Both the position numbers and the translations under genes were made by a program. 64,000 bases of DNA from Eutreptiella sp. 'Long Island Sound 2002'. Lineage: Eukaryota; Protista; Euglenida. Each line of letters begins with the position of its first letter. The first letter of the stretch is position 1. Under the pieces are notes generated by a model. That model was not told the origin of the DNA. It ran no database searches and saw only the letters and a list, made by a program, of their open reading frames with translations. The stretch spans positions 76,136,001 to 76,200,000 of the forward strand of contig OZ038379.1 in the NCBI GenBank assembly GCA_964036045.1, written 5' to 3'. Below, in pieces: positions 553 to 39,790 of this stretch.

Positions 553-1500
553 GTGCTCAGTGCTTTTGCCATGCCTAAACGTGGAAAACGCCGCCGCCGT
601 AGGCGTGGAAAATTCCGTCACCGCCGGTCGGTGGAGGCGCTGCAGTGCAGGCGGGAACGTGCGCAACAGCACCTCAGAGTTGTGCTGGAGAGGCGCCTTG
701 CCTGGTGGCCGGTGAAGCGGATCTGGTTGGGTCTGGCTGCTAGGCTGGTCTTCATGCGGCCTTGCTCGAAGGAGGATGCTCCGGGGGTGCTGCAGCTGGC
801 GGCGCAGGACCTGGCGGGCCGTTTGCATGGTGTTGCGGAGCAGCAGAAGACCCCGTCCGGTGATGCGAATGTTAAGGGGATGGGCGGGAATCACCTGTGC
901 CGCCATCGTTGGATTGTGAGGGTTGGGGATAGTAGGCTGTACCTTAGTCTGTCGTCGCACACGAAGGCTGGGGGCCAGCGTCTGCCCTATATATGGGTCC
1001 AAGGGAAGCAGGTGTTGGTGCGGCGCGTGTGCTTCATGTTCCGTGCTTTTTGAGCGCCCGCCGTTTCTGAATATGCGGGGTCTGGAGTTTGGGGCCTGTG
1101 CATGCGAGCACTGTACCCTGTGGTTGGCGCCGGCGCCATGGATGTTTGTCTGCGGGCACCAGAAGCTGCCCCCCTGTGAGTTCGGGCGCCAGGGCTGCGG
1201 CCCCATGCCTTTTCCTGTATATGGGACCAAGGGGTGCGCGAGTTTACTGCAATGCATGTGCTATATCCAGGTGGTTGTAATCACCATCCGGTCTGCATTG
1301 CTTGAGTAGGATCAACATGTGTGCTGATGCGGTGCGGTCGTGCAGTGATACGGGCCGCTGACGTGAAGGCATCGGTGGGGATTTTAACCAATGGGAATAC
1401 AGCGCAATGAACTCGCGCGCTGGGGTTCGCGCCGGTGCTGTGGCTGCTTGGCTGCGTGCGCCGAGCGCTGACCCAGTTTGGGTTCGTATGTATGTAGGTT
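553..1500 (+). pseudogene. Degenerate tyrosine recombinase of the same retroelement
   Basis: Across frameshifts and stops: box I-like FLNMRGLEFGA (~1065-1100), HxxR-like GLHCLSR (~1290-1310), then GR*(W)R...EY (~1350-1400). This is the R...HxxR...GRW...Y order of YR integrases. Confidence 0.55.
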
Positions 1501-1551
1501 CCAGCTTGGTGAGCGTGTATGGTCTGTGCATGGGGACAAGGATGAGGGGTA

Positions 1552-2113
1552 CCAGAGGTGAATTGTTGAATTGCCTTGGTGCTTTGTCCTTTGTGATCCC
1601 CTGTTTGTCTTGCCCCGTTTTCGTTTACGAACAGGGGATCACTATCTCTGTGTGTGTACAGATTTGTTGAAAATTTATTGTGTTCCCCCCGCCCGCCCCC
1701 GCGCCCGCCCCCTCACTGTGTGCGGCGGTGCATATGAGTCTGAGATTCTTTGTTGGTGGGTTGTCGATACTTGCGGTATATTTCTGTCAGTTGTTATAAT
1801 TTTGGGGCTTAGGCCTGCATCAGTGCTGCTTCACGTGTTTTGATCGCCGGTGTGTGTACGTGTGTGGTTGTGTCCCATAGACCCGGCGGGGTCTTTTGGA
1901 GAGCGCACACTAAGGCCTGTGGCGCTATGGGCGAGTACAGCTTTAGATCTATTGCAGGCGATGAGGTCGCCCGCAGCACTCTGACTGTTTTGGTCGGCCA
2001 GAGGTGAATTGCTGCAAGACTACCAAAACGTCTTGAGACCAGCGCCTGTGCAAGCACCTGCGTGCCAGAGTTGAATTGTTGAATTGCCTTGGTGCTTTGT
2101 CCTTTGTGATCCC
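1552..2113 (+). repeat. 49-bp direct repeat (1552-1600 and 2065-2113, one mismatch) with a third partial copy at 1998-2011
   Basis: ccagag(g/t)tgaattgttgaattgccttggtgctttgtcctttgtgatccc occurs twice; ccagaggtgaattg occurs a third time. Confidence 0.9.
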
Positions 2114-2394
2114 GATGTCCCACCAAAAATATGTGGCGTGGGCAACGATGTGTGTGTACTGTATGCCAGGGCGTGAACAATGGCTTCGTGCGTCGTTGAC
2201 CTCTGTTGAGGATTTGTACAATGTTTCTTTTCGAAGGGCGGCCCGTGACACACGAGCTATGTGGCACAATGTATTGTTGTCCCTTACCCGGGCTTTGTGG
2301 GAAGAAGCGGCATCTTCGCGGCGTGCCTATTTTTCAGACTGCTGTAGTGTGCATACAGCTCATCATCTGGACCAACGGTGGATCCACTGGCTTA

Positions 2395-5012
2395 GGAGGC
2401 CTTAATTGCCCGCTCTGGTGACCCTCAAGAAGTCGAATTTGTTACCCCGAACTGGGGTGTTTTTTTAGGGTATGAAATGCAGGGGGGGGGCGAGTCACTG
2501 TTTCAGTGTGTGTTTTAAAAGCCATTTTTTTAACCGTACCAATGTTCCAATTCCGAATAGTCAATTTCAACCCCCAAATCAGCCAAATTCCAAAAATGAA
2601 ACGAAATTTCGCCACTCCTTTGAAATTGGCCGATATCATACCCTTTTTTCATGCATTCTTTCTCTCATGAGACGCGAAATTTCGTCACTCCTTCATTATT
2701 TGATGAATCAATGCCCTTATTGTGTATTTGTATTTGTGTATGTTAATTTGATTTCATTTGTACCGAAATTTGTGCCTTTGATGAATTTTATGAACATTCC
2801 GACAATCTTGGTATGCAGTATGTTCCCTGATCTGAGGCAAATATTTGAGTATTTGTTGTGAGGTGACCACAGGACATGGATCCGGCACTGCTAAGGGTGG
2901 TTGTGGCAAGTCGTGAGTTTCAAAACGTTGATGACCTCATGATGGATGTTGCCAATGGGGGCTATGCAAGGTCATTGGCTGTCTGGGCCCTGGCAATGCG
3001 AACAAATTGACGCTCACGGAAGGATCTTACACGGCTGCTGTTTGCCCATGGAATACGGAAGAAGCCCCGTTGGTACACTGTTTTCTCAAATCAATTGTTA
3101 CGCTTGTGGCGACTTTTGACAAAGATGGCAGCCCCTAATGCACAGTCCCAGGATGTACTAATGCCTATTTTATTGAGCCGGAGGACACGCCGATTGTTGG
3201 CTCCCACAGGACTTGTGCATGCAGCTATGCCCTCACCTACTGCCAATCCATGCCAACAAGCCACTTGGCTATGGCAAAGCATGCAGAACCGCCAGATGGC
3301 GCTCTGGTACGACAACTGGGTGAAAAAGAATTATGGGGTGGCCCCGCTGCATCCCGACCACTCCATAAATTACACAGTTGTGGCCGTGTTACATTTGCCA
3401 GCGCTACCACCATTTCCGGGTCATGTCTCACTAATTCATGCCGTCCAGGCAATTGGGGCACATGTTGATGCTTTCCAACTCCGTCATGCGGATCTGTTTC
3501 GGCGGGTTTATGCTCTTCCTGACATGACTTAGCGCACCTTTGTTAGAGTTCCCCTGGGCATTGTGCGGCAGAATGTGCTATCTCTCCGTTGGCAACCAAT
3601 GATGCTGTCTCAACTACGGTGTGGAACCAAACTTGAAACTTCTAAATACAATTCGGCATGTGCAGCAGGCAACCCGGCATGATTTGCCTCTGTGTGTGGA
3701 TATGAAGATTCACTATGAGCTCTTGAAATACCTGTATGGGGAGAGTTACACTTCATGGATTTTCCAATTGCACTAGTTAAGCCTCCTCCTCATCTTCGGG
3801 GTTGGCACCCGTACAAGCATATGATCACTCTGCTTTACCGCAATTTTATGCCCAGAATCTGGCTGATCGAGAGAGTACACACCGATTTCAAGGAAGGGGA
3901 TGCAGTACCGACAAAGGTGAAGCTCCTTCATATGGAGAAGACAATACTGGCGCTTTGTCTAAATGCTGGCACTTACCTACCAAGAGTTCAGGCAAGATTT
4001 GATGTATTTGCTGTGGCGGCGCAGAATGGACCACTGACGGACATGCAGTCTAAAAGCAAGGAGCTATTTTTGGGGTTGAAGGTGTTGTTGAACGAGTATT
4101 GCCCAGCTGCATTTAGGATTGGTGTCCTCGTGAGGGACTGCAATTGGGCTGGTAGAGATCCCGGAAGTGGGAAGAATGCCTTGGCAGTGCTGGAGTCTTG
4201 TTTGTTGGTTATGCTTTCTTTGGTGGGGGATCAATGGGAGAATGTGGAGTACATCCTGGTGACATGGCAGCGTTGGCACTCTCGAGCGCCCGGTTGTATT
4301 CACGGTGAGGAATATGGGGAGGCAATGTTGAGCAAGTTGTGTGCACTGCTATGATGAGTCATTGGTGACTGCAGAACCACCATCCTTTGAGCAGGTGACT
4401 TGAATTTTAATTTGTGTCCGACTTTATTTGACTTGATATTCAGACTCACCCTTTGAGGGTGTTGGCACATGGAATTGCCTTTTGTAGGCAACATTTGGTA
4501 TTTTCTGTGATGTATGTTTGTGTATTGATTGATTATAAAGAGTTCTTTATGGTTCAAATCGTATGTCTCTGATATTATGTATCAATCGGGTAATGTGGCA
4601 AGCAGCCAATGGACTGACAGTATTTTTCTACCTCATTATCCTGCATTTTGCTAAATGTGGCGAAATTTCGCGTCTCGTTGAAATTCCTTGAAAATGGGGG
4701 TTTGTTTCACCATGCATTAGTGTATTGTTTCACAGAGTGTCACCTGTACACAACAGAAACCCTTCACTGTAGAATGCAAGTTGTCCTTCAGTGTTATTTC
4801 TTTGAATTCAGATACCTGTTTTAGCTGGTTTACAAGTGTGCTCAATTGCAGGCAAAAAGGGCAAAGTGGACAATATGGGGCATGATTTCAGTCAAAGACC
4901 TCACTCGTTGTGTGCCGTGTGCAATTGGGGGGTAGTAATTCACCATTTTTTTCACCCCATGAATGGCCTTCATTTCGCCCCCCCCCCCCCCCCGCGGGCA
5001 ATTAAGGCCTCC
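2395..5012 (+). mobile_element. Complete cut-and-paste DNA transposon: 19-bp perfect TIRs and a TA duplication
   Basis: Left TIR GGAGGCCTTAATTGCCCGC (2395-2413) and right TIR GCGGGCAATTAAGGCCTCC (4994-5012), with TA at 2393-94 and 5013-14 (empty site CTTAAG). Subterminal inverted motifs: gagacgcgaaatttcg (~2669) versus cgaaatttcgcgtctc (~4661). Confidence 0.9.
2875..4354 (+). pseudogene. Frameshifted DDE-like transposase (DUF6589-like motif order) inside the TIR element
   Basis: Motifs LWYDN, LCVDMKIHY, RGWHPYKH and GEEYGEAMLS appear in order across ORFs 3095-3532 and 3755-4354 and the intervening frames. A paralogous copy lies at 12293-13790. Confidence 0.6.
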
Positions 5013-31125: not shown

Positions 31126-31630
31126 CAGGGTTTTGCTTAGTGTCCGTCCTACCCCATGGGGGGGGGTGGGTCTGGCAGAATTTCAGGGTGGGTGGGTGTC
31201 CAACCAGCCCCCCCCCCCCCCCGGGGTGGGGTGGGACTTTGTGGGGGCCCTTGGGTCTATCGAGCCAGTGCCACTTCTTTCCTTCTTCTGTTGCAGGTTC
31301 TATGTATCATGTTTATTTATGGTGTGTTTACATGGCATTGCATATCACGTGTGCATGCCCCACGCCCATAAAGGGGCTAGGATGCACTGTCATTTGTGTC
31401 AAATGCGAAGGGTGTCTGCCCCACACCCGTAAACTTGGTCTTCTGTATTGCATGTCTCAGTTGGGTACGTGGGTGGGTGGGTGGGTGGGTGGGTGGGTGG
31501 GTGGGTGGGTGTCAGACCCCCCCCCCCCCCGGGGGGGGTGGGACATTTGTGGTCTGTGGGTATGCCAAAATTCTGGGTGGGTGGGTCCCGGAATTAACCC
31601 CCCCCCCCCGGGTGGGTAAGCAAAACCCTG
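31126..31630. mobile_element. hAT-superfamily MITE: 14-bp perfect TIRs and an 8-bp TSD
   Basis: CAGGGTTTTGCTTA (31126-31139) ... TAAGCAAAACCCTG (31617-31630). GGCCGAAA is duplicated at 31118-31125 and 31631-31638. CAGGG termini with an 8-bp TSD are hAT hallmarks. Confidence 0.92.
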
Positions 31631-31848
31631 GGCCGAAATCACGAATATGTTGTGACAGTGTACACATACTAGGATACAAAAAGATTATAGTTGCAGCCCC
31701 TACCATTGCCCAGGGCCAGTCATGGCCCGTGTGAATCACGCAAAATGTCCTGTGTTGGGTGAAAACTGCCATTATTCTAGCGACGCTTGACGGTGCAAAG
31801 GGCCGTTGTTGCTTGATCATTTGGTGAAAATGAAAGTACGTATAAAGT

Positions 31849-31887
31849 ACTTTCTAAGTGTCTATTTTTTTCGTTGCTATTTTTTCG
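31849..31887 (+). other. Genomic copy of the euglenid spliced leader plus a tandem relic leader
   Basis: ACTTTCTAAGTGTCTATTTTTTTCG (31849-31873) versus the Euglena SL as recalled, ACTTTCTGAGTGTCTATTTTTTTTCG: one substitution and one T fewer. CTATTTTTTCG follows at 31877-31887, then ATG at 31891. Confidence 0.8.
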
Positions 31888-31890
31888 TAC

Positions 31891-34800
31891 ATGGAAAACC
31901 CCACTGTGGGGCTGAATGGAGTGCCGCAGTACCCGGAAGTGCCGGTGAGATACCCGGTCGTCCCGGCTGGCACACCTGCCACTGCGGAATCGACTAATTT
32001 GACTCCGATGAAGACCGAATCCTCGCCATCAACAGCTGATGCCGCGGACGGAGTACTGGTGCCGACAACTGCAACTGATGGCGATCCCGGTGTTCCCGGC
32101 AGTGTTGCGCGTGCGCCTGGTATCACTGGTGCTCCTGGCGCTCTTGGCCTGGATGCCGCAGATGGAGTACTGGCGCCGACAACCGCAACTGGTGGCGATC
32201 CTAGTGTTCTTGGCAGTGTTGCGGGCGAGCTTGGCATCACTGGCGCTCCTTGGCGTAATGGGCGCTCCTGGTATTGCCCACATGGCAGACAACTCCGTCA
32301 CCAGCAGCAGATTCCCCAGTGTGGCAGGCAGCCTCGTAACGAGGAACAACATCCCCACAGGCACTAACGTTGTTTCCACGGCGTACGATGGTGTTGCGTC
32401 AGAGCCACCTGTGCAGGTTGTTGTTCCAACCACCATGGACACCACCCCCAATTCAAAAGCACAGAAGTATCAATCAGTCAATTGTTCATATGCAACGAGC
32501 CATGTTGCCTATGCCCTTTCGGACGCGGCTTTCATCTATCCTATCACTCCGAGTTCTGCCATGGGCGAGTTTGGAGACGTTTGGATGGCCCAAGGCCGCA
32601 AGAAAGGGTTCAATGAGGTTTTTGACGTGCGTGGGATGCAGTCTGAAGCTGGTGCCATTGGTGTGTTGCACAGAGCGTTGGCTGTTGGTGCGTTGGCCAC
32701 GATGTTGACAGCCTCTCAGAGCTTGTTGTTGATGATTCTGAATATGTGCAAGATCGCAGAACTGTTACCTTCTGTTATTCATGTCTCCGCTGGTGACGTA
32801 GCAGACCAAGCGCTCTGCATTTTCAGTGGTCACTCGGACGTTATGGCCGTTCGTTAGACTGGTTGGGCGATGCTGAGTTTGCACGCCGTGCAACAGGCTC
32901 AGACATGGCCCTGATCGCCCACATCGCCACCGTGAATTTTGAACGTTTCTTTTGTTCCCTTCTTCGACGGGTTCCCAACCAGCCATGAAGTGAACAAGAT
33001 CAAACTCATGCCTGCTGCAGAAATGAAGAAGCTTATCTCTTTAGGCTCGGTTGAGCGGCATTGGAGCCGCGCGCCGAACCCAGCCCACCCTACGCCTGGC
33101 ATCGTTTTTCAGTGCGCTCAGCGTATAAATGTCTTCTATGACAGCCTTGTAGAAATTGTTCAGGAGACCATTGATGAACCTGCACCTCACTTGGGACGTC
33201 ATTACAAGATCTGGAGTACATTGGTGATGCTGATGCCGAGGACGTCGTTGTCATTATGGGTTGTGGTTCCACGGCGACTTCCGAGGCAGTTGACCATCTT
33301 CGAGCACAAGGCTACAAAGTGGGAGCACTGATGGTGCACTTGTACCGCCTGTGGTCTGCGGATTTGTTCGAGAAGGCTTTGCCGAAATCCGTGAAGCGCA
33401 TTGCCGTGATGGGTCGGTGCAAAGAGGTCACTGCTATGGGTGAACCGCTGTACGTGGACGTTCTGGCATTGGTCGGACGTGTCCACCGTGACGTGAAAAT
33501 CATCGGCGGAAAGTATGGTCTGGGTTCCAAGGAATTCACTCTCGAGCAAGCACTTGCTATTTACGATTACCTGGTGGACCCAGGGTCAAAACACAGGTGC
33601 ACAGTCGGGATCAACGATGACGTAAACATGACCTCTATCCCGTATTGGGGTCAGGCCCCTGGGGACACAGTGCCCAAGGGCACTCGCCAGTGCTTTTTAT
33701 GGGGTTTTGGGATCTGACAGAACTGTTGGGGGTAACCTCTCCGCTGTGGAGATCATCAGTGACATCAGTGACCCGATGGTGCAGGCTCAGGCAGCAACAA
33801 CGGCGGAGGCCCCTGCCACTCCAGGTTCCTGTCCGTCCATGGGTGGCTTCGCATCCCCCAGCTTGGCAGGCACTCCGTATGCGGGAACAATGACCGTCTC
33901 GGGCAGCAGCGATACGGGAGCAACGACGATCGCAGGTACCACGTTCAGCGGTTTGACTGGAGCAACCGTCCCGGACAGCAGCGTTATTACAATGACACCC
34001 ATTCCGGGCACATTCGGAGGTTTGTCTAGAATGACCATCTTGGGCAGCAGCGTTGTTGGAACGACACCCATCGCATGCACATTCAGCGGTTTGTCTGGAA
34101 CAAGCATCAACGGGACGCCCATCTCGTGCACCACTATTGGCGGAACGACGATTGGAGGCTCCCATCGTGGGCAGTCAAACATCTCGGGGATGCCCCTCTC
34201 TGGCATTTTCAATTGTCTCAGCACCCTTTGATTTACAGGGGGGCGTCGGTGGCCTTGGCGGTTGCACGCCAGGCCTCGGCAGTACGTACAGCAGCGTGAC
34301 CGGGACGAGCATCCCTGTTGTTTCTAGTCCGGCACTGCCTGGTTTCAGCTCGTCAGCTGTAGCTCCTGGCACCAACACATGGATCAATGGAGTCCCACAA
34401 TTTCCCGTCTACTGGGCACAGTTTTTTGCTTTTGTGTGCTCATATCTGAATTGGCTGGTGACTCTTACAAGGCGGGTTCTCCGAGCATGCTAGGGGGGGG
34501 TTCCAGCTGGATCATACGCGGCTAGCGGTATTTCCCACGCCACAACAGGGTTGCTGGGCGCGACAGCGGGCGTGTCAAGCATGTTGGACACCCCTGGTGC
34601 TGGGGATGGTGCGGGAGATGTTACCAGCGTTTCCACCCCCAAAGATCTGCCTTCGTCTCACCCTGATCGCTTCTCCATGGGCACCACCTCCAGTGAGAAC
34701 CAGTTGGTTTCCCGACTCACCGGGGGGGAAATGTCTTACAGTGGGGTAGACGGATCCATCATCAATACTAACACTGGTTGGGAGAAAGCCGTTGATCAGC

Positions 34801-35796
34801 TCAAGAAGGATCTTGATGAGTTGAAGACAGAGACTCGGATAAACCATCATAGAGAATGTAGCCAATCAGGCGTGATGCTCCTCCTCAGCCCCATGAAAAT
34901 CCTGTAGCGGATCAAGGGTTGCACTGGCAGGGCGACTCTGCTGCATGGTTGCAACATTCGACTACATCTCAGCGTGCATGTCTGCTGCAACTTCAATTTT
35001 GTAGTCACCACGGCACTCTTCTCGGATCTTGGCTTCAAAATCAGCCTTCACAACCTCTAAATCGTTGGCCAATTAGGTGGCCTTGGCACTGGCTTCAGAA
35101 TGTTTCCGAATCTCATTGGCGTACATATCTTGCAAACGATGCAGCTCATGCTCTTTTGCCTGTTTGGACTGCCGACATTTGTTCAACTCCTCGATCTTGC
35201 CGTCTAGAAGCGTCCTCAACGCAAAGGTGTTATGCTATCTTTGATCTCTGACTATCGTTGATGCCAAGGCCACCTGTGCAGAGCTCAGCACCACAAAGAT
35301 CCAACAAGGTGGCCTCATTATGTCTTCCACGCTTGGCGACGACATGCAAGCCAACCTGACGCAATATGTCGGCAGTGTTCACACTCCTATTGATGTGAAT
35401 GTTCCTTCCTTTTCTCCTGCTTCGTCGATGTACTCTACCATGCAGGCCACCCCAGGCCTGGCTCATGATCCTGCCCAATTAGCTGAGCACCACAGTGTGC
35501 AGGCTCCACTGTGCCCAGCTGTTGACCTTGCCATGTTCCCCTCCCAGGGACGCTCCACAGAGGTGAGCGACATGGTGTTTCAGGATCCCCCAGGATGGAC
35601 GAGGCTGAGGGGAGTGGGGAGCAGAAGGTCTAGCGAGACCCCTACCAGCTCATCACCATCCGGACAAGGCACGTATCAAAACCGGAAACACAAAAAGAAG
35701 CACAAAGGCAAGAAAAGGGACCGGAGATCACAAAGTTCCTCAGGGTCAAGGTCAGAGTCACGGTACAGTAATTCTCAAAGGAGGAGATACTACTGA
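31891..35796 (+). pseudogene. Intronless chimeric retrocopy: T/S/G/P-rich repeats, a PNO fragment, more T/S/G-rich repeats, a coiled-coil segment and a basic K/R/S tail
   Basis: A chain of frameshifted ORFs (31891-32367, 32039-32857, 32939-33331, 33256-33717, 33707-34231, 34551-34907, 35320-35796) starts right after the SL. There is a ~123-bp tandem duplication at ~32035-32270, and NGVPQ(Y/F)P occurs on both sides of the PNO part. Confidence 0.55.
32400..33787 (+). pseudogene. PNO: Pyruvate:NADP+ oxidoreductase (PFOR domains I-II and the start of III), processed pseudogene fragment
   Basis: ATSHVAYALSDAAFIYPITPSS, DVWMAQGRK, MQSEAGA, LTASQSLLLM, HSDVMAVR*TGWAML, FFDGFPTSHEVNKIK, GRHYKI, GEPLYVDV, IGGKYGLGSKEF and GTRQCFLWG all match Euglena-type PNO/PFOR as remembered. 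It has a stop codon, several frameshifts and no introns. Confidence 0.9.
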
Positions 35797-36899
35797 CACA
35801 AAAAACAGATGGCCAAAATGAAACAAAAGTTGAAAACAGCACAAAATCAGCAGCTACAGGAATCGTGTGAAATGGAGTTAACACACCCCGGATGCACGAA
35901 AACGGATACAAGTGCACCTCGAAGTACCATAAGTTGAAGCCGCCAGCACAGAACATGAGGCACCCCCCCCCTCCGCTAGTCTAGCAATTGCCGCATACAC
36001 CAGCATAGGTCCTAGCGGTACCAATGCAGAGTGGCCCGCAAACGGTCCATTACCACTACACGCATTCGCCTTATCAGCAACCCCCAAGGCTAGAGGGGCC
36101 GCATGCCATCAACCCAACACCACACCGGCCTTGGTCGGTCCAACCAACGCACAGCCAACATACACACCACACTCAGGTCAGGAGGTGCAGCAAGCGCTCA
36201 ACTCACCGCCACAACCTATCTCTGCGGCCACGGCGGTCAAAGCAACCGTACGGCCCAGTGTGTGGAAAGCTTGGACGCAAAGCAACCCCGAATTTATGGC
36301 GTCCCTAGATGACGCCTTTGACGCGGGAAAAGATGCAGTGCGCGCCGAGGCCTTGGCAGAGTGTTCCTCCCACGGAGCGACAACGGGCGAGGTAATGACT
36401 CATCTGCGAACAAGGCGCCCACTGTCACCCCGCCACGTCCGCCCCCGGGTCCCCCCACGCGTCATCCTTCATACACGTACCAGGACCATTATGTGCCCCG
36501 GCATCATTCGCAAGCAGCCTCTTCCGGTCCCCCGTCCTATGAGGAGTCCAAGTACCACCAGCGACCCGGAGAGAAGGGCGCATTTGGAGGCCGAGGCAAG
36601 AAACGTGGGTGGGTCGGGAAGCTGGCACCCAAACCAAAGGTTTACCCTCCCTGATCCCCGGACAATACCACGCAATAGTTTCTCGTTTTGCATGATATGG
36701 GATCACGTGATGACATCGATAAACCAATTGATGCATCCACCATTAAATGTGCTTCTTTAGGGTCGACGCAAGCGAGACCACAGCTGTGAGCCACGGACGG
36801 GAGGAGAGTACGGCCCAAGAGACCGCACCAGCGGCCGCACAGAGGCCGACACCTCACCCGTCAGTGGTCATGGGACACAAGGAGAGTAAGGACGCCGAC

Positions 36900-38500
36900 A
36901 CCTTTGCCCCTACATGAACGTGCCGCCAAGAGTAAGGAGAGTCCGGCCCAGAAGATAGCATCAACTACGGCACGGAGGCCGGCGCCAAAGCTCATGGCCG
37001 TCAAACAAGGTGTAGGGGAACATGCAATGATGTTGCCAATAACCCCTCGCTTTGTCATGTCGCGCCATGAGCGAAGTGCGCCATACCATGATTTTGATTT
37101 TGCGCGCCGCCGCCCGGCAACTAATGTCTTCTACATTTGACGGTGGGGGTTCCCAAAGCATTCAACATTCCGATGACCCAATGGATACTGACCCTTGTGA
37201 ATCCTTTGCAACATGTGTGTGTGGGCATCCTCTACCGTGTTCATCGTCGTGCATGCATGTGGCCTCTTCCGGGTAGGGATACCCATGGCAGGAATCGTGG
37301 CAGGCATTAAACAACCGGGTAAATACATGGATGAATGAACACCCAAATTTGCCCCCAATACACTCCAGCAAGCTGGGGTACAGGTGGGATGCGGTGCAAA
37401 GTGACAACAACCGTTTGCAGGATACACCAGGAACACGTGTGCCCCATGACACAATTGTAAGCAAACACACGCATTGGTCAATGCCGGTCAATGCCGGACC
37501 CCACTACCAATGAACTCATGTGCGGACACTCCCCTCACTCCCTTGTATGCTTTACAGCAGCACCTTTAAGTCTGGATGTACGTGCATGGTCGGAACCCCC
37601 AGAATGGGCTCGAAACCGTTGTGTCTGGGCACCATGGTTCATGAGCACCCGCAAGGCACGTGAGGTGGACACAAGACGACATAGAACACCCACCGCTTTA
37701 ACTGGACCAAATCCCTTGGTACCTATATGAAAGGTAGTTTTGTTCATCATAAATTGTTGTATGAAATATGAACGCATTCTGCTCTTGCTAGCGTACCCAT
37801 GGGCCATTTTTGTTCACAATTCGGGGGGCTGGTTCAACACCCTTGAGGTGAGTTTTTTTTTGTGGACCGGGGGTTTTTTGTAAAAATTACCATTTTTGCC
37901 AGTTTGTGCAGTTGTGAAAACATCCTCCCCTGTTCATAATTCCATTCATAATCCCATTCATAATTAAGAGCTCGTTTTATGAACGGGGTTTTCATTTTAT
38001 CAACGCGTTTTATGAACGCGTTGTAGTCCTGCGCCAACCCCAGCCAAAAAATGGGTCATAGAGAGGAGACACTATGATTTATTTTAGGTACACACTGGGC
38101 GCCTTGGCTCCTGCTCACAGGAACTCGCCGGATGACATGGGTTAAATGGCTTTGGGCAAATGAGCGGTGGGATGGATGTGGCGCGCCATGGGATCATAAT
38201 GTTGTGAAGTGCCCATGGGCAATACCAGGCATGGCACCACTGTGCATACGCGGCTGATTCAATGCCGAAAATGGGCTCCTTCCTTCCGGAAGGCATGGAC
38301 ACAATCATGGGCCACATGGGCTGAATACGCAGAGCAATGGTATGACAACGCGTTCGCGGAAGACATGCACCATGTCGCGTGCCTAAGAGTTCCTAGTTCG
38401 CTCTATGACCAACTGCCCCAGGGATGTGGACCCCACTTCCGGGAGCACGTGGAAAGAAAGGTGACAAAGAAGGAGCAACGTATATTCCTACCCTGAGTAT
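36900..38500 (+). mobile_element. Highly degenerate LINE 3' remnant (RNase H-like and Trp-rich C-terminus)
   Basis: NVFYI(F)DGGG, and PWFMS..., QC..WAPSFRKAWTQSWATW, resembling the PWLWG/HCPAWSDFWDMWHRSW region at 23000-23200. Confidence 0.4.
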
Positions 38501-39289: not shown

Positions 39290-39790
39290 CCCCGAGATTG
39301 ACTCGTGCTGTTGCACAACTATTGCAATTTTGTCAAAAAAATAACGATAGTACGTATAAATCCACGGGGAGTCATGTGGCACGAGCAAGGCCCTCTTAGT
39401 GGGTATAATTGGCCGTCAAAAGCGCTGTTTTGGGCTTGCTCGCACTACAATGGGCAACAAAGGGTTGACCTACAGCTGCCCAAAAGTTGCCCGTGTGCGT
39501 GGATTCACTTTTGTCTCCCACTCCTATCCCGTTCCACTTTTTCCACTTTTGTCTTCCATGTTCACCTCCTATCCGATGATGGGACTCCCGAGTGGTATGT
39601 CCAAAACTGAGTCCCCGTGTAGAGCCCAACCGGTGAGCTGTTTAGTGGCGCTTGCAATTTTCCAAAAATTCAGTTTCTTCAGCAACCCCTTTGTCGCCCT
39701 TACAACGGTTTTGGGTGGTTGTTTGTGGACAATACAGGTTTTTGGGCACCCATGGGGATCTATGTATGGGCCGGTTGGCCCATGTAAATA
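39290..39790. repeat. Dispersed repeat family member, reverse orientation (cf. 5980-6600 and 30640-31100)
   Basis: gctgttttgggcttgctcgcactacaatgggcaacaaa is the reverse complement of the conserved family block. Confidence 0.65.

Follow-up and report, generated by a model that had tools for sequence, protein, structure and literature searches.

The stretch of DNA analysed here, called the window, comprises 64,000 nucleotides of a euglenid genome of 2.28 Gb (C2:76,136,001-76,200,000). At position 31849 of the window a complete spliced leader (SL), the short sequence that trans-splicing adds to messenger RNA (mRNA), is encoded in the DNA itself. It is followed by the decayed remnant of a second leader, by an ATG and by a rearranged copy, without introns, of a host gene referred to as gene X. 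The structure, the relatives and the probable origin of this locus are described in this report. The features are as follows.

31849-31873, plus strand: outer full SL, DNA-encoded, the youngest layer, reading ACTTTCTAAGTGTCTATTTTTTTCG; homology to paralogues begins at its first base
31874-31887, plus strand: inner relic of an older SL, TTGCTATTTTTTCG, a decayed 14-nt SL 3' half, truncated at its 5' end and directly abutting the outer SL
31888-32392, plus strand: 3-nt 5' untranslated region (UTR), ATG (31891), and exon 1 of gene X with the 5' part of its exon 2, with at least one frameshift
32393-33786, plus strand: captured internal fragment of spliced pyruvate:NADP+ oxidoreductase (PNO) mRNA, with Pfam matches POR_N and PFOR_II, a stop and two frameshifts
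33787-34832, plus strand: rest of exon 2 and exon 3 of gene X, with three frameshifts
34833-35232, minus strand: inverted block, of which minus-strand 35232-34983 is spliced exon 4-exon 5 of gene X (…ELHRLQ/DMYANEIRKH…)
35233-37701, plus strand: unrelated multi-copy sequence, called Y, with colinear copies on C11, C24, C1, C2 and C14; truncated at 37701
31400-31632, no strand assigned: high-copy G/C-run repeat, outside the retrocopy, with dozens of 84-97% matches and a word depth in the thousands

The leader-headed copy of gene X in the window

The leader of the species was fixed from the SL-RNA genes of the genome itself. Among the first 30 loci that match the SL 22-mer CTTTCTRAGTGTCTATTTTTTT, 13 are SL-RNA genes with an upstream region common to them, and these give the species SL as (A)CTTTCTGAGTGTCTATTTTTTTTCG, followed by GTATATACTCGCTCCTTACTAGGCAGC (GTAT...). 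The window leader differs from it by a T-run that is one T shorter and by one G>A substitution, which is also present in three of the 13 SL-RNA genes (L007, L009 and L010). The original prediction, which was made from the window sequence, had placed a leader close to that of Euglena at 31849-31873, and this was borne out by the comparison with the species SL. It had also placed a second, decayed SL 3' half three bases further on. The relic is real, but the supposed three-base spacer belongs to the relic: CTATTTTTTCG at 31877-31887 is the inner part of a 14-nt unit, and the homologous relics of sister copies read GTGCTATTTCTTCG, GTGTTATTTATTCG and ATGTTATTTTTTCG. The relic is followed by TAC and then by the ATG at 31891, three bases after the relic as predicted. 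The absence of a GT donor after the leader was likewise confirmed. In addition, no SL-RNA intron is present anywhere in the window, no Rfam family matches there, and the 40 nt upstream of the window SL are unlike the conserved upstream region of the SL-RNA genes. These three findings show that the window SL is neither an SL-RNA gene nor a piece of such a gene.

The junction itself was compared with contigs from four public sequencing runs, which cover 31560-32556 with 0 differences, so an assembly artefact confined to this record does not account for the SL junction. The kind of these runs is not on record; the contigs were taken as DNA because they pass without a break across both the repeat upstream and the junction of the SL. 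A chance origin of the SL head is excluded, as the 22-mer read backwards has 0 matches in 2.28 Gb and the relic is conserved in paralogues. Between the G/C-run repeat and the SL (31633-31848) no other match was listed, with only the best candidates scored. By this result among the best candidates, and with about 20 paralogues of the body, the segment is not the terminus of a high-copy transposon, which the original prediction had named as a case that would refute it.

Gene X codes for a euglenid protein that is so far uncharacterised. A region rich in Ser, Gly and Thr, a coiled coil and a tail of poly-Lys can be recognised in this protein, and no Pfam domain was found in it. The C-terminal half of X has a 394-amino-acid homologue in the euglenid Eutreptiella gymnastica (UniRef100_A0A7S4G3N2), and given this homologue X can be taken as a genuine host family. 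A relative on C6 (L046) has open exons and neither an SL nor a relic before the homologous ATG. Its GT-AG introns lie at L046 4885-5806, 6615-6951, 7333-7566 and 7669-8037. Three of these four introns (1, 2 and 4) are precisely absent from the window, where the exons are joined at 32024/32025 (intron 1), at 34442/34443 (the 336-bp GT-AG intron 2) and, on the minus strand, at 35131/35132 (intron 4). The exons were searched one by one, with no spliced model joined, and the search with C6 exon 2 gave as its sole match the copy on C3 in a separately deposited assembly.

The body had been described in the original prediction as about 3.9 kb of intronless coding-like sequence. It is without introns, but it is a mosaic with at least six frame changes and one CAG>TAG stop at 32855-32857 relative to the C6 and C18 proteins. 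The open reading frame (ORF) from the ATG at 31891 has 158 codons, and a 114-bp internal duplication is present in the gene X part at 32038-32250. Judged from its reading frames, the window copy is a dead pseudogene. The colinear sense copy of the mRNA is limited to 31849-34832 and stops exactly at the boundary of exon 3 and exon 4 of gene X (34832). Beyond this point 34982-34833 carries on in the same sense as the inverted exon 4-5 block. Twin priming was considered for this block and rejected, as the sense and inverted parts are in the wrong order, and the window contains no inverted repeats to account for the rearrangements. The segment 35320-35796, previously counted as part of the coding sequence, lies in Y. 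The copies of Y on C11, C24, C1, C2 and C14 are 70-84% identical and none has an SL; Y contains ORFs at 35320-35796 (with a basic, Ser-rich tail at its end) and 36131-36760, and it has no Pfam match across 35233-37701.

Two further observations concern the rearranged 3' part. The same processed pieces occur in differing order and orientation in window 34833-36400, in L048 (G000:C13:34090951-34092860) and in L046 on C6, with one breakpoint exactly at the exon 3/4 junction. In the public-run contigs, joints between opposite strands are seen at 34816/35426, 34832/35223 and 34848/35357, in copies of at least 95% identity.

Paralogues, captured fragments and leaders across the genome

The original prediction had made its case depend on paralogues with an SL plus a relic. 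Such paralogues were found behind different upstream flanks, and some consist of an SL and two successive relics. The C3 copy reads ACTTTTTGAGTGTCTATTTTTTTCG GTGTTATTTATTCG TCC ATGGAAAACCCC..., which is the same order of SL, relic and ATG as in the window, and the C3 locus was also found in a separately deposited assembly. Homology between the window and C3 copies starts exactly at the first base of the SL, with unrelated flanks upstream. Pattern searches identified 15 further loci with the relic, TCC, ATGGAAGACCCC and a clearly homologous N-terminus. In all, about 17 copies (window, C3 and the 15 further loci) have a near-canonical SL above the same decayed relic. Upstream flanks were read for three members of the family, the window, C3 and C14 copies; they are unrelated to each other, and homology extends from the SL on.

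Eleven family heads were read through the leader, and most consist of the canonical SL, GTGCTATTTCTTCG, TCC and ATG. The inner relic has derived changes common to the copies, namely a base lost in GTGTCTA, a shorter T-run and, in one subfamily, a T>C substitution. The outer leaders are canonical or nearly so, the middle layers are canonical except for a T-run one base shorter in one copy, and the innermost relic has at least three changes common to the copies. The inner relics are more mutated and hence older than the outer leaders. A canonical outer SL over a relic with derived changes fits the addition of a fresh leader to an inherited one. Three layers, in the order SL, TGTCTATTTTTTT(T)CG and inner relic, are present at C14:4915570, C1:21109770 and C1:38085177, and C1:194390640 has the same SL/TGTCTA junction of a third layer. 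At C17:869589 a matching head was seen, the leader stack of which was not read. The three-layer copies fall in two subfamilies, which indicates that the third cycle took place at least twice.

Two members of the family contain fragments of other genes. The PNO fragment of the window (1,393 nt) is 85-96% identical to the exons of a gene on C18 and is without five introns of that gene (83, 77, 106, 112 and 103 bp). The C6 and C3 copies of X are without exactly this segment, which in the window is in frame with X at both of its junctions. A start of the fragment at a splice acceptor was considered and rejected, since the C18 ORF extends about 50 codons upstream to a plausible start; both borders of the fragment are thus inside exons. 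The fragment has no complete, open series of POR domains; it contains the N-terminal POR_N and PFOR_II only, broken by the stop and the two frameshifts. The C18 locus (L043, G000:C18:48132667-48134800, minus strand) is an apparently intact PNO-like gene with short introns and an ORF that starts MRQSSSALRPLLAARD...; three of the introns begin with GT and two appear to begin with TATG or TGTG, for which the BLAST boundaries are possibly 1-2 nt off.

The second capture, independent of the first, is in the three-layer copy on C14 (L063, G000:C14:4914077-4917109). In its positions 1500-3033 the X head is followed by chlorophyll a/b-binding units that resemble an LHC polyprotein (PF00504, E = 1e-45), at least two in number, and X then resumes at the equivalent of window 34096, with the frame kept at both passages. 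The LHC-X junction is also present at C1:194391728 and C17:868208, and a public-run contig shows it as a loose end at 34096. The frame is kept at all four junctions of the two captures (X-PNO-X and X-LHC-X), for which the chance expectation is about 1 in 81. From these two cases it may be suspected that the reverse transcriptase switched templates and that fusion ORFs were then selected for.

Leaders outside SL-RNA genes are not peculiar to the family of X. The original prediction had assumed that the SL is genomic in SL-RNA genes only, and this does not hold for this genome. The 22-mer occurs 7,466 times in 2.28 Gb (0 times when read backwards as a control) versus 1,311 occurrences of SL+GGTAT, the signature of SL-RNA genes, which leaves several thousand genomic SLs outside these genes. 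Among the first 30 SL loci, 17 are dispersed leaders, each heading a different body. A search for stacked junctions of the form GTGTCTATTTTTTT-N(1-12)-TGTCTATTTTTT found 190 in the genome (control 0), with up to four layers, and none of them precedes an SL-RNA intron. Tandems of an SL and a relic SL without the SL-RNA intron, for which the original prediction had suggested a search, form a genome-wide pattern. Among the 100 junctions listed of the 190, most read ...TTTTCG/TGTCTA, where the inner unit begins at the base after the AG inside the SL (CTGAG/TGTCTA). Sister copies of the window copy have this CG/TGTCTA junction as well. A second class, CG/AGTGTCTA (for example G000:C4:178408707 and C10:51110897), keeps the SL-internal AG and has no obvious acceptor. 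Some stacks (L015, L059) have a full-length inner leader with 2-5 foreign nucleotides between it and the outer leader.

Several side observations were made on the genomic leaders. SL-RNA genes cluster near chromosome ends (for example C1:0-0.46 Mb and C2:0-1.73 Mb) where they are spaced irregularly, 8-60 kb apart; at C2:188.59-188.62 Mb they form a tandem array with a regular period of 1,303 bp. A CTAAGTG leader variant occurs in some SL-RNA genes of the chromosome-end clusters and the tandem array. A dispersed multi-copy family with about 230 SL+GGTGT sites (L016-L018; G000:C1:2337680, 2491435 and 4988478) is headed by the SL, GTGTCTTTTTG and TCC ATG CTTGCCCGGGCC.... The first bases after its SL resemble another decayed leader relic, and inspection of one body (L017) gave no recognisable ORF. 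The related heads L053-L069 have a ...CCCGGGGACATGCCCC motif in common. Many dispersed leaders have a long run of C or G, or a repeat of the GGGGGTACCCCC type, immediately before them; the sequences concerned are 31400-31632 of the window and the upstream flanks of L016-18, L027, L029, L053, L054, L057, L060, L061 and L064. One contig joins window 31616 and CCCCTTTAC to the start of an SL. This placement could reflect an insertion-site preference or a carrier repeat.

Origin of the stacked leaders

The window locus is very probably a second-generation processed retrocopy of host gene X. Directly observed are the architecture of the sequence, the layering of the leaders, the missing introns, the differing flanks of three copies and the genome-wide pattern. 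The earlier claim that the locus went through a cycle from mRNA to DNA twice is supported by the paralogues with an SL and a relic, by their differing flanks and by the leader-less, intron-bearing relative on C6. Serial retroposition is well supported over both DNA slippage and the double trans-splicing of one RNA.

The proposed course of events has five steps. First, an intron-bearing X gene resembling that on C6 would have been transcribed, cis-spliced and trans-spliced to an SL, and its mRNA would have been reverse-transcribed and integrated, which would place the SL in the DNA. Secondly, this copy of X would have been transcribed from outside, and the acceptor for trans-splicing would have been at or next to the AG in the DNA-encoded leader (CTGAG/TGTCTA...). 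A whole new SL would then be added, and a stump of 14-16 nt of the old leader would remain. Third, many rounds of reverse transcription and integration of the mRNA with SL and relic would have produced the window copy and about 16 more, and some copies would have passed through a third cycle. Fourth, in the lineage of the window a 1.39-kb piece of spliced PNO mRNA would have been placed in frame in exon 2, probably by template switching of the reverse transcriptase or by capture of complementary DNA (cDNA), and the exon 4-5 part would have become inverted. Lastly, the window copy would have decayed into a pseudogene. From the DNA sequence we infer which RNA intermediates existed, which acceptor and which enzyme were used and in what order the rearrangements took place.

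An unlikely alternative is a single retroposition followed by a tandem duplication, at the DNA level, of the T-rich 3' half of the SL through replication slippage. Formally, an SL plus one TGTCTATTTTTTTTCG repeat equals a 16-nt tandem duplication, T-runs are prone to slippage, and the heads vary between T7 and T9. However, the approximately 1,311 SL-RNA genes offer the same slippage-prone sequence and have 0 duplications before the SL-RNA intron, versus 190 in dispersed heads. The junctions fall in two fixed registers, one of them exactly after the SL-internal AG, and the inner layers are decayed and inherited where the outer ones are canonical. The full-length inner leaders of L015 and L059, separated from the outer leader by foreign nucleotides, cannot be explained by slippage; they fit an acceptor in the former flank.

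It is very improbable that both leaders were added at the RNA level, with an SL trans-spliced onto an already SL-capped mRNA, and that a single retroposition followed. The SL does contain an AG, and the product in DNA would look identical to that of two retropositions. However, a mature mRNA would have just 8 nt before this AG and so, by the established mechanism of splicing, no branch point or pyrimidine tract. Furthermore, the derived changes of the relic in about 17 copies under a canonical outer SL imply time spent as DNA between the two additions, and the decay in the three-layer copies is graded.

There is little to recommend the view that an SL-RNA gene was broken here, or that a SLACS/CZAR-type retrotransposon specific for SL genes left its footprint. 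Elements of this kind do occur in the kinetoplastids, the sister group, and the SL here does stand outside an mRNA context. Against this, in addition to the unlike upstream 40 nt, the missing SL-RNA intron and the lack of an Rfam match, a Pfam scan of the ten largest ORFs in the body found no reverse-transcriptase domain, and the complete SL heads an mRNA body in which exons are joined as after splicing. Hardly any credence can be given to a live, promoter-driven gene with a 5' UTR that merely resembles the SL: the ATG 3 nt past the relic does open a 158-codon ORF, but, compared with the C6 and C18 proteins, the frame shifts at least six times and a stop comes too early, an exon block is inverted, and the 25-nt SL match has a chance expectation of zero.

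Several points weigh against serial retroposition as set out above. First, the initial 3-4 nt of the window relic are too decayed to place its truncation exactly at the SL-internal AG, and the CG/AGTGTCTA class of junctions is not explained by the AG-acceptor model. Secondly, some copies of the family may be DNA duplicates, as flanks were read for three members only, and two copies on C7 (C7:26778240 and C7:26782685) are 4.4 kb apart. Third, when the heads of the window and C14 copies were used in protein searches, no match and no transcript-derived head came up, and the public-run contigs, which confirm the SL junction, carry no information on expression. Lastly, neither the window copy nor the C3 copy showed a poly(A) remnant or a target-site duplication above chance. 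The original prediction had suggested a search for these marks at the ends of the locus, and it yielded at best the 12-mer AGTACGTATAAA at 31835 and 39349, beside an A7 run (39335-39360), at a chance-level E~0.5. This search was also run on 38 further SL heads and their flanks of 1.5 kb, and gave no informative result.

Comparison with known systems and meaning of the finding

Slamovits and Keeling reportedly described in 2008 the 'recycled' retrogenes of dinoflagellates that carry relics of the dinoflagellate spliced leader (DinoSL). In these the leader is encoded in DNA and truncated relics are stacked, the inner ones being older and the number of layers giving the number of cycles (PMC6050394; also PMC5585692, PMC12014239). 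A review calls the dinoflagellates 'a unique lineage' for this recycling of SL relics (PMC6050394). The copies described here are like the DinoSL retrogenes in that a DNA-encoded leader stands at the 5' end of intron-poor copies, 5'-truncated relics are stacked below a full leader, the inner relics are more mutated than the outer, and the layers would count the cycles of retroposition. They differ in that the organism belongs to another eukaryotic supergroup, the leader, of 26 nt, is unrelated to the DinoSL, the evidence is genomic alone and the window copy is a dead chimera. In the searchable literature all papers on SL-tagged retrogenes ('spliced leader' with 'retrogene') concern dinoflagellates. 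No paper on euglenid retrogenes or leader relics was found, the draft and chromosome-level Euglena genome papers included, with subscription journals outside the search. This agrees with the original prediction, to which no description of such a case in euglenids was known. A dinoflagellate-type process in a new lineage, genome-wide and not peculiar to the window locus, is well supported.

Other systems have parts of this structure. Mammalian processed pseudogenes and chimeric retrocopies are made by the reverse transcriptase of long interspersed nuclear elements (LINEs, L1) with template switching. Like these, the copies of X are intron-less mRNA copies, have pieces of two mRNAs joined (X-PNO-X, and X-LHC-X on C14) and have an inverted internal segment. 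Unlike these, the window copy has no demonstrable poly(A) or target-site duplication, and all four chimera junctions are in frame. In contrast to classic twin priming, the 5' part of the window copy is sense and the 3' part is inverted. SLACS, CZAR and CRE, non-long-terminal-repeat retrotransposons of trypanosomatids, also tie the biology of retroelements to the SL within the Euglenozoa. However, these elements have SL-RNA genes as their insertion sites and code for a reverse transcriptase, whereas in the window a host mRNA was copied into a dispersed site and the leader forms its 5' end. The SL-RNA genes of Euglena share their first 25-26 nt with the window, continue with GTAT..CTTACTAGGCAGCTTTGGTGC, have a conserved upstream region and form arrays; the window has neither the continuation nor the upstream region.

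It is possible, although doubtful at present, that the recycling of leader-tagged mRNA has a major part in the duplication of genes in this genome and is still going on. Thousands of SL-headed copies exist, with up to four layers, and trans-splicing may let copies without a promoter be re-expressed. In the same tentative reading the process would also shuffle domains, and X-PNO-X (window) and X-LHCII-X (C14, C1 and C17) would be independent, RNA-mediated in-frame captures that were at first selected as fusion proteins.

SL relics act as a built-in bar-code, which marks retroposed genes without the need for evidence of intron loss and counts their RNA cycles, and which has so far been held unique to dinoflagellates. 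The same stratigraphy in a euglenid points to convergence, with 'mRNA recycling' in a second lineage that uses trans-splicing and is unrelated to the first. Retrocopies may thus owe their viability to trans-splicing itself, since they can do without a promoter of their own. The finding offers a concrete explanation for part of the 2.3-Gb Euglena genome, which is rich in paralogues, and a means by which the retrogenes in it can be counted and dated. In addition, the in-frame captures of PNO and LHC make RNA-mediated domain shuffling testable in this system.

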